Source: Salpingoeca rosetta (Eukaryota > Protista > Choanoflagellata). From it: 19,559 nucleotides of DNA. The stretch is taken from NCBI GenBank assembly GCA_033442325.1, contig JAWQFM010000027.1, positions 543,334 through 562,892 of the forward strand. Reading direction: 5' to 3'. The position numbers were made by a program, and so were the translations under genes. This document shows positions 468 through 1,652 of this stretch, in pieces. The stretch's first letter is position 1. Each line of letters starts with the position of its first letter. Under the pieces are notes generated by a model. That model was not told the DNA's origin. It did not search any database and was given only the letters and a program-made list of their open reading frames with translations.

Positions 468-905
468 TGCGAGCCCACACAGACGCGCCAACAAAAGCAA
501 CCACCACCCCCCATGTCTGTCTGCAGCGTGTGTGCTATGGTGTGTGGTGTGTCGCCAGCCTCTCTGATCATCGGCATAGACAAGACATAACCCTTTGTGA
601 TCAAACTTGTTGATTTCCAGCATCATTTAATGATGAAGAGCTCGAAGTACGTGAGCGGCACATGGCAGTACAAGTGTGAAGGACTGCTCAGTCACAACAA
701 AAGAGCACTGGCGACAGGATGACAGTGGCGGCGGGCGCAACAGTGATTGTCGATGACAGTGACGCGCGATTCCTTGCTTGTTGGCTGCTCTGGTGAACAT
801 GTTCAGAAGCACAGAGAGCAAAACGATTGTGTGAGTTCATTCCAACCAATCAAAAGTGCATGAAAGAAGTGTTGGTCGAATCTCAAGCAGAAACAAGTTT
901 GGAGC

Positions 906-1044
906 AACACTCAGACAAATGCCTCTTTGTCGTTCATGAAACGTTTCCACGCAGGCTGAGAAGGCTTCGGAGAACCCAAAGCAAAACCAGCCCACTATCC
1001 GGAAATGTGACAGATCAGACTCGTCATTTTGTTCATCACCGTGC
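906..1044 (-). ncRNA. SNORD15: Box C/D snoRNA, U15/SNORD15 homologue (double guide for LSU rRNA)
   Basis: On the - strand: C box GTGATGA (1039-1033); ATGACGAG-T-CTGA (guide plus D' box 1018-1015); AGAGGCATTTG-T-CTGA (guide plus D box 914-911); short terminal stem GCAC/GTGT. Both guides are complementary to the conserved LSU segment CAAAUGCCUCGUCAU and match the two U15 antisense elements as recalled (targets equivalent to yeast 25S Am2281 and Gm2288). Confidence 0.88.
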
Positions 1045-1343
1045 ATGCCCTTTTCACAGAGTTGGTCTCTCGACCACGTACAGCAGAAAACACCATCACA
1101 TGTGACAGCGCTGTCATGCTCACCTGTTCAGCGGGTTTTGGGCGTCCAACAAAAAATGGCACGGAAACAATGGGGGCACTTGGTTGTTCGGTCGGTGAGG
1201 TGGGGAAGTGGCCTGGGCTCAAACAAGAAGCGGGGGCACAACAACGAGAATGTGAGTGGATGGTTGAAGCGCACGCGAGTGCTGCTAATAATAAAGCTCA
1301 AACAAAGCACTCATGATAAGACCAGGTACACAACAGTGACGTG

Positions 1344-1435
1344 GTGAAGGAATCAGCGAAAGGTCATTCAACATATGTTGATTCAGCCCCGATAGATGGT
1401 TAAAGTTTGCCTAAGCTATCATCACACTCCTTCAC
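1344..1435 (-). ncRNA. SNORD2: Box C/D snoRNA, snR39B/SNORD2 homologue
   Basis: On the - strand: 8-bp terminal stem GTGAAGGA/TCCTTCAC (1435-1428 with 1351-1344); C box GTGATGA (1425-1419); guide ACCATCTATCGGG-G then D' box CTGA (1386-1383); C'-like TGAATGA (1370-1364); D box CTGA (1356-1353). The guide is complementary, with one mismatch, to conserved LSU CCCGAAAGAUGGU. The D'+5 rule selects the G (yeast Gm805 equivalent). Confidence 0.85.
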
Positions 1436-1646
1436 AAACACAGAGAAGAGGCGGGAGAGAACACACAACAGTCAAACACCCATATGGGACCATCGCACAA
1501 ACCTAATCGAGAAGTCGTGTGTCTGTCTGTTGGTCGATGAGAGTGGAAGAAGGAGAAAATGAACACGTGCACACACACAAGAGAAGCAAAGAAGGCCAGT
1601 GCAAACTTTTTCCCCCTTTCTGCTTGGCCACGTGGCAGAGCCGATG

Positions 1647-1652
1647 TTTATT
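1647..1652 (-). promoter_or_regulatory. Candidate AATAAA polyadenylation signal of the RA-PH gene
   Basis: TTTATT on + (AATAAA on -), about 380 nt downstream of the TAG at 2032. Motif only. Confidence 0.3.

Follow-up and report, generated by a model that had tools for sequence, protein, structure and literature searches.

U15-like and snR39B-like box C/D snoRNAs share one small locus of Salpingoeca rosetta and may be intronic products of a non-coding host gene

Results

The locus and its features

Two small nucleolar RNAs (snoRNAs) of the box C/D class, designated here sno1 and sno2, are encoded on the minus strand of a 1.5 kb gap separating two convergent genes of the choanoflagellate Salpingoeca rosetta. 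The gap belongs to a stretch of 19,559 nucleotides (nt), referred to as the window (assembly GCA_033442325.1, contig JAWQFM010000027.1, positions 543,334-562,892), which we number from its first letter. sno1 resembles snR39B/SNORD2 and sno2 resembles U15/SNORD15; they lie 300 nt apart, and in a search of the genome (55.4 Mb, 68 contigs) guides of the two types were found at this one small locus only, whose DNA is single copy. An earlier note on this DNA had proposed that the pair is hidden in the introns of a non-coding gene. Here, we present evidence that both RNAs are almost certainly genuine snoRNAs and that both are probably carried by spliced introns; for an independent host gene we see evenly balanced chances.

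The plus-strand neighbour is represented by its final two exons, and its coding sequence (CDS) stops with TGA at 465-467. The minus-strand neighbour, the RA-PH-SAM gene, reaches its TAG stop at 2034-2032, past a last intron that can be read directly. Positions 553-1735 are free of tandem repeats, with dinucleotide arrays on either side, which agrees with the earlier description of a repeat-free island between convergent genes. The GC content of this repeat-free stretch is 0.49, as against 0.55-0.68 in the coding parts of the window. The features of the locus are collected in Table 1.

Table 1. Features in and around the snoRNA locus, in window coordinates (splice-site scores from the matrices described in the text).
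Feature	Position	Strand	Signals, score or basis
sno1, snR39B/SNORD2-like box C/D snoRNA	1344-1435	-	Rfam SNORD96 family, boxes, stem, guide
Parts of sno1	C 1425-1419; D' guide 1400-1388; D' 1386-1383; C' about 1373-1368; D 1356-1353	-	
sno2, U15/SNORD15-like double-guide box C/D snoRNA	906-1044	-	Rfam SNORD15, boxes, guides
Parts of sno2	C 1039-1033; D' guide 1029-1020; D' 1018-1015; D guide 925-916; D 914-911	-	
Candidate exon 1	1503-1599	-	suggested by pyrimidine (TCT/TOP-like) tracts 1599-1579 and 1561-1545
Candidate intron 1, 290 nt, holds sno1	1213-1502	-	CTCAC 1256-1252, pyrimidine tract, splice scores
Candidate exon 2, non-coding, 89 nt	1124-1212	-	no ATG; two open frames, no matches
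Candidate intron 2, ending at 790 (334 nt) or at 785 (339 nt), holds sno2	785-1123	-	CTCAC 835-831, CTGAAC 806-801
Candidate terminal exon 3	600-789	-	ATTAAA 631-626; putative end
Donor TAG/GTTTGT	1502 (first intron base)	-	7.1-7.7 bits, about 98th percentile; third donor
Donor CAG/GTGAGC	1123	-	10.6-10.7 bits, 99.8th percentile; best donor of the gap
Donor ATG/GTGCGG	1692	-	8.3-9.2 bits, 99.2-99.4th percentile; second donor
Acceptor CCCAG/	1213	-	6.8-8.3 bits, 95.5-97.8th percentile; best with 24 introns, third with 20
Acceptor CACCAG/ (earlier note's choice)	790	-	2.5 bits, 77.6th percentile; low
Acceptor AGCAG/	785	-	6.9-7.0 bits, about 96th percentile; third with 24 introns, second with 20
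Two CACGTG E-boxes, candidate ribosome-biogenesis-type core promoter	1634-1629; 1569-1564		motif scan
AATAAA, likely poly(A) signal of the RA-PH-SAM gene	1647-1652	-	380 nt past the stop at 2034-2032

Structure and family assignment of the two snoRNAs

In sno1 a C box reading GUGAUGA is followed by D' and D boxes that both read CUGA, and positions 1435-1428 pair without mismatch with 1351-1344 to form an 8-bp terminal stem. sno2 likewise has GUGAUGA as its C box and CUGA as its D box, with a terminal stem of about 4 bp. Both RNAs have the general box C/D arrangement, with RUGAUGA towards the 5' end and CUGA towards the 3' end, closed by a terminal stem.

At its gathering thresholds Rfam gave no match over the whole window. 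When positions 600-1800 were scanned with reporting by E-value, the SNORD15 model (RF00067) matched 1044-906 of the minus strand at 47.6 bits (E 9.6e-9; gathering cut-off 75 bits) and the SNORD96 family (RF00055), which holds the snR39B-type guide, matched 1431-1348 of the same strand at 30.6 bits (E 0.0017; cut-off 43 bits), both as full-length alignments (1-146 for SNORD15). Searches of the entire genome with the two models returned one match each, both at this locus (E 1e-7 for SNORD15, 0.019 for the SNORD96 family). The Infernal comparison with Rfam proposed in the earlier note has thus yielded one match per snoRNA by E-value, both below the gathering cut-offs. Since sno2 scores under the SNORD15 cut-off, we call it U15-like and not a curated member of the family. 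Boxes, Rfam matches and guides all agree with the claim of that note that two co-oriented minus-strand box C/D snoRNAs, one snR39B-like and one U15-like, lie here.

Pairing of the guides with the rRNA of the same genome

The guides were tested against large-subunit (LSU) ribosomal RNA (rRNA) taken from the same genome. Its rDNA copies are dispersed over contigs C3, C30, C8 and C24, and the small-subunit (SSU) sequence beside the C3 copy is partial (model positions 626-1823). At both guide-paired positions, in CCCGAUAGAUGG and in CUCGUCAUUU (1191-1203 and 2923-2939), this LSU rRNA departs from the usual eukaryotic sequence.

All 13 positions of the D' guide of sno1 pair with LSU 1191-1203, and the fifth base upstream of the D' box stands opposite G1194. 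This is the G of the LSU CCCGA element, the nucleotide selected by guides of the snR39B/SNORD2 type, and we take it to be the site served by yeast snR39B and human SNORD2. In sno2 the D' guide forms 10 bp opposite LSU G2933 and the D guide forms 10 bp opposite A2926, 7 nt away, so that two guides of one RNA address adjacent LSU sites within CAAAUGCCUCGUCAU, which is the mark of U15. A2926 and G2933 are presumably the U15 sites that yeast serves through snR13 and snR75. Three guides, then, pair over at least 10 bp and place their target by the fifth-nucleotide rule; for the fourth, the D guide of sno1, a comparison with LSU, 5.8S and the partial SSU rRNA gave no convincing target.

Two of the pairings contain a change on either side of the duplex. 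The S. rosetta LSU reads CCCGAUAGAUGG where the consensus guide of the family implies CCCGAAAGAUGG, and sno1 carries the matching A against the rRNA U; we assume that this U of CCCGAU replaces the A that is methylated in yeast by way of snR39/snR59. At the second site the LSU reads CUCGUCAUUU, and sno2 has an A before AUGACGAG where 54 of 55 U15 homologues from metagenomes have a G. Because of these two compensatory changes between guide and target, a chance origin of the guides is untenable, and the locus neatly illustrates the co-evolution of a guide with the rRNA that it targets. From its sequence, the locus evidently adds two functional rRNA methylation guides that had been unannotated in the choanoflagellate gene set. 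sno1, with fibrillarin, would direct 2'-O-methylation of LSU G1194, and sno2 would direct the same modification at A2926 and G2933. Homologues of these guides have been described in Neurospora, where CD47 corresponds to snR39b (26S-Gm785) and CD1 to snR13 (PMC2780460).

Splice signals around each snoRNA

The splice sites of the locus were scored with matrices built on introns of the same genome, at first 20 and later 24 inferred introns. Seventeen of these came from Pfam-located myosin-head exons, their borders being set by continuity of the hidden Markov model, reading frame and the GT-AG rule; introns of RPL30, SNU13 and V-ATPase E extended the set, together with two window introns read by eye. 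The training introns measure 131-372 nt (median 270). Their donors are AG/GTG(C or A)G-like, with a nearly invariant G at +5, GTTCGT and GTGTGT also being included, and of the branch-like motifs in their final 70 nt, CTCAC occurs most often, in 13 of the 24. Sites were scored on the minus strand from 470 to 2035, the percentile of donor 1123 being its rank among all GT in the window.

The four splice-like motifs on which the earlier note had relied (1502, 1213, 1123 and 790) are all present on the minus strand. Judged by sequence signals, sno1 and sno2 each lie between a competent donor and acceptor of their own, so that neither intron would hold more than one of them, and in both candidate introns a CTCAC stands 40-42 nt before the acceptor. 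The lengths of the two introns, 290 and 334-339 nt, fall inside the training range, and the snoRNAs keep similar positions within them, sno1 lying 67 and 131 nt and sno2 79 and 116 nt from the respective splice sites. Among 7,437 random placements (100-nt, on DNA of the same genome), a bracket at least as good in the same relative positions occurred with a frequency of 0.004 for sno2 and 0.043 for sno1, giving a combined probability of about 2e-4; the test is conservative, since the background includes the training introns.

A parallel for such an arrangement exists elsewhere in the genome. A search for the U24 family led to the V-ATPase E gene, whose 363-nt last intron, with borders fixed by conserved coding exons, holds one U24 copy at distances of 113 nt from the donor and 155 nt from the acceptor, so that intronic C/D snoRNAs of this geometry do exist in S. 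rosetta. Taken together, the splice signals suggest that sno1 and sno2 are probably both processed from spliced introns.

A perfect 14-nt palindrome, TGACAGCGCTGTCA, was noticed at 1103-1116 of the minus strand, where it starts 7 nt inside candidate intron 2; it could fold into a hairpin or serve as a binding site for a protein.

Candidate exons, promoter and 3' end

The exons left by these introns have little to encode. No ATG occurs on the minus strand in 1640-1503 or in exon 2 (1212-1124), and the first ATG of the host model, at 663 in exon 3, opens only 20 codons. Neither the frames of exon 2 nor any of the open reading frames (ORFs) of the region gave a Pfam family match (E below 0.1); ten maximal ORFs from the region were all absent, by exact look-up, from a collection of 15 billion proteins, and a word search with a 64-amino-acid ORF spanning acceptor 790 found no protein match. 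The candidate exons are thus without a meaningful ORF. The statement that the intervening exon encodes nothing recognisable is borne out by the lack of an ATG and of a Pfam match, and the Pfam and protein look-ups gave no sign that the exons belong to a conserved protein-coding gene, an outcome that the earlier note had named as fatal to its proposal.

Upstream of donor 1502 the sequence holds candidate promoter motifs. Two CACGTG E-boxes within 70 nt and two pyrimidine tracts all lie between the AATAAA (1652) and this donor. CACGTG occurs at 16 sites in the 19.6 kb window, and two in a given 130 nt have a probability of about 0.005; candidate exon 1 also holds the sole CTG[CG]C-plus-pyrimidine run of the minus strand of the window. 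Core promoters bearing CACGTG are reported to be the hallmark of ribosome-biogenesis genes across holozoans, a choanoflagellate included (PMC2570694), and paired E-boxes are found upstream of RPL30 and of another L7Ae-family locus in this genome. From sequence, we tentatively favour an own promoter for the host on the combined evidence of E-boxes, pyrimidine tracts and the position of the AATAAA.

The SNU13 gene (contig C20) has an apparent short 5' exon that begins with GCTGCC and a pyrimidine run and is followed immediately by a donor and a CACGTG E-box, and its 5' tract resembles the one before donor 1502. A shared CTGCC-pyrimidine promoter motif was considered and set aside as anecdotal, being present at SNU13 and not at the other loci checked.

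At the other end of the locus, an ATTAAA (631-626) lies 160 nt past the last acceptor. This hexamer occurs three times in the window and AATAAA only twice, both strands counted.

Discussion

The evidence assembled here fits a short, independent, non-coding RNA polymerase II host gene on the minus strand that carries one box C/D snoRNA in each of two introns, a proposal that we consider about evenly poised between right and wrong. Transcription would start in the pyrimidine-rich stretch at about 1600-1545, behind the two E-boxes, and the primary transcript of about 1 kb would be spliced at 1502/1213 and at 1123/790 (or 785). The excised introns would be debranched and then trimmed by exonucleases down to the cores protected in the snoRNA-protein particles (snoRNPs), while the joined exons, about 350-400 nt with no AUG before the last exon, would be a disposable non-coding RNA, polyadenylated after the ATTAAA at 631-626. 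The two snoRNAs would be the only useful products of such a gene.

Several observations weigh against this proposal. The Rfam scores of both snoRNAs stay under the gathering cut-offs, and the splice matrices were built on only 24 inferred introns. The splice-site pairs put forward in the earlier note withstood scoring in part: 1123 is the best donor of the gap, 1502 the third, and 1213 the best acceptor with 24 introns, but acceptor 790 is weak at 2.5 bits and is outscored by the AG at 785, five bases downstream, which reaches 7.0 bits. Acceptor 790 is nevertheless the first AG past CTGAAC (806-801), and two of the myosin introns use CTGAAC 8-11 nt before their AG. Donor 1502, with GTTTGT, is only moderately good, and the bracket around sno1, taken by itself, has a probability of about 0.04. 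Poly(A) hexamers are unreliable guides in this genome, the V-ATPase E gene having none within 600 nt of its stop. A stronger donor than 1502, at 1692 (9.2 bits), precedes the AATAAA and, joined to 1527 or 1213, would link the locus to the RA-PH-SAM transcript. Finally, among 44 metagenome contigs with U15 homologues there was no related locus on which conservation could be tested.

The first alternative to be considered is that the snoRNAs are made without splicing, either through endo- and exonucleolytic processing of a dicistronic precursor or from two promoters of their own, the splice motifs being coincidental. Many yeast and plant snoRNAs are produced in this way. Such an account is helped by the abundance of GT and AG dinucleotides, the modest sno1 bracket and the low score of 790, and in Neurospora 9 of 55 C/D snoRNAs appear to be independently transcribed (PMC2780460). 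Coincidence sits less easily with donor 1123, at the 99.8th percentile and 79 nt before sno2, with the combined bracket probability of about 2e-4, or with the succession of CTCAC, pyrimidine tract and AG at intron-like distances in both spacers. Nor was any TATA-like element seen by eye directly upstream of sno1 or sno2, and the other C/D snoRNA locus checked in this genome, that of U24 in V-ATPase E, is intronic. We regard production without splicing as unlikely, though deserving of serious consideration.

A second alternative keeps the introns and changes their owner: the RA-PH-SAM coding gene would be the host, and the snoRNAs would lie in introns of its 3' untranslated region (UTR), with some of the transcripts passing over the AATAAA because donor 1692, or a different donor of the 3' UTR, is joined to 1527 or 1213. 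The locus is on the strand of that gene and lies only about 530 nt past its stop codon. The basis of this explanation is a possible 166-nt minus-strand intron, 1692-1527, with a donor of 8.3-9.2 bits and an acceptor of 5.3-6.9 bits, which would remove the AATAAA and both E-boxes. The same splicing would leave a micro-exon of 24 nt, however, and between the RA-PH-SAM stop and the snoRNA locus sits an AATAAA, a hexamer that the window has only twice, with the two E-boxes and the pyrimidine tracts right before exon 1 also counting against a host gene further upstream. A signalling scaffold would, moreover, be an unusual snoRNA host by comparison with the translation-related hosts in this genome. 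We consider this origin improbable. A word-index protein search with the 1,270-amino-acid RA-PH-SAM exon, whole or as its SAM region only, returned no matches.

That the exons form part of an unrecognised protein-coding or micropeptide gene is hardly credible: exon 2 is open in two frames and several ORFs of 50-120 amino acids overlap the region, but candidate exons 1 and 2 lack an ATG, the first ATG opens 20 codons only, neither Pfam nor the protein collection gave a match, and the GC content drops to 0.49.

An independent host gene with intronic snoRNAs is the reading with which we proceed, and much of the hidden-host interpretation of the earlier note survives in it, namely the snoRNAs themselves, the quality of the splice signals, the intron sizes and the non-coding exons. 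Its presentation of GAS5/SNHG-type hosts as an animal arrangement was overstated, since non-coding hosts with one snoRNA per intron have been validated in Neurospora crassa, where five conserved clusters lie in UHG-like hosts with ORFs of only 159-267 bp, confirmed by reverse transcription-polymerase chain reaction (PMC2780460). With the layout proven in a fungus, it is to be expected in a choanoflagellate. The likeness of the S. rosetta locus to the mammalian UHG, GAS5 and SNHG genes and to the Neurospora hosts lies in the one snoRNA per intron, the short ORF-poor exons and the canonical splice signals. It differs from them in having two introns and two snoRNAs only, in being predicted from its sequence, and in a 5' terminal oligopyrimidine (5'TOP) start that is only suggested. 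Animals and fungi already provide examples of this gene layout, and the locus would be a further case of it.

The snoRNAs themselves invite the same comparison. sno2 shares with human SNORD15A/B (U15) and with yeast snR13 and snR75 the C/D architecture, a length of about 140 nt and two guides to LSU sites 7 nt apart in the conserved region CAAAUGCCUCGUCAU; yeast divides the two U15 guides between two snoRNAs. Against the SNORD15 family as a whole, sno2 falls below the gathering cut-off and has A instead of G in its guide, which fits its own rRNA. sno1 has in common with human SNORD2 and yeast snR39B a D' guide to LSU CCCGA(A/U)AGAUGGU that selects the G, a length of about 85-90 nt and a terminal stem, and differs in its score below the cut-off of 43 bits, its compensatory A and its second guide without an rRNA target. 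The human hosts are those that the earlier note had given, with SNORD15A in RPS3 and SNORD2 in EIF4A2 (PMC3025573). Unlike these, sno2, the sole U15-type match in the genome, is not in RPS3, and sno1 is not in an eIF4A gene. The placement of U15 and snR39B guides outside RPS3 and eIF4A in S. rosetta implies that the human host associations arose or moved later.

The V-ATPase E gene provides the nearest comparison within the genome. It resembles our locus in that one of its introns, 363 nt long, holds a C/D snoRNA whose distance from each splice site exceeds 100 nt, and differs from it in being a conserved protein-coding host, with exon borders that can for that reason be read from the protein, and in having one intron with four snoRNA copies. 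There are five U24-type copies in two V-ATPase E introns, one of which holds four copies spaced about 178 nt from each other (contig C7:656,206-657,709; 716-1594 therein). A single snoRNA in each intron is therefore no strict rule in this genome. The search for other snoRNA hosts gave nothing further, six-frame searches with PF01991 and PF02854 matching nothing and an E-value scan of L7Ae-family loci with Rfam returning microsatellite noise only. We found no description of choanoflagellate snoRNAs or of their hosts in the literature searched.

Our picture of how snoRNAs are produced is unchanged by this locus. If the splicing proposed here is true, it would place non-coding snoRNA hosts in the closest unicellular relatives of animals, bridging the fungal and the animal examples. 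One may go further and imagine that the host is driven by a Myc/Max-type E-box together with a TCT/TOP-like core promoter, and that growth-coupled hosts in the style of GAS5 and SNHG were ancestral to choanoflagellates and animals; we offer the idea tentatively, as one that is more doubtful than probable.

A snR39B-type guide was not found on any of the 44 metagenome contigs with U15 homologues, and there was no close relative of S. rosetta among them. On several environmental eukaryotic contigs U15-type snoRNAs stand in two to four tandem copies, 0.8-2 kb apart.

Two further observations concern the surroundings of the locus. About 1 kb ahead of the window start, the assembly has a gap (a run of N). 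An AATAAA on the plus strand at 1290-1295, one of the only two in the window, is antisense within candidate intron 1, and the plus-strand gene that ends at 467 may have a 3' UTR of 800 nt running antisense across sno2 and exon 2.

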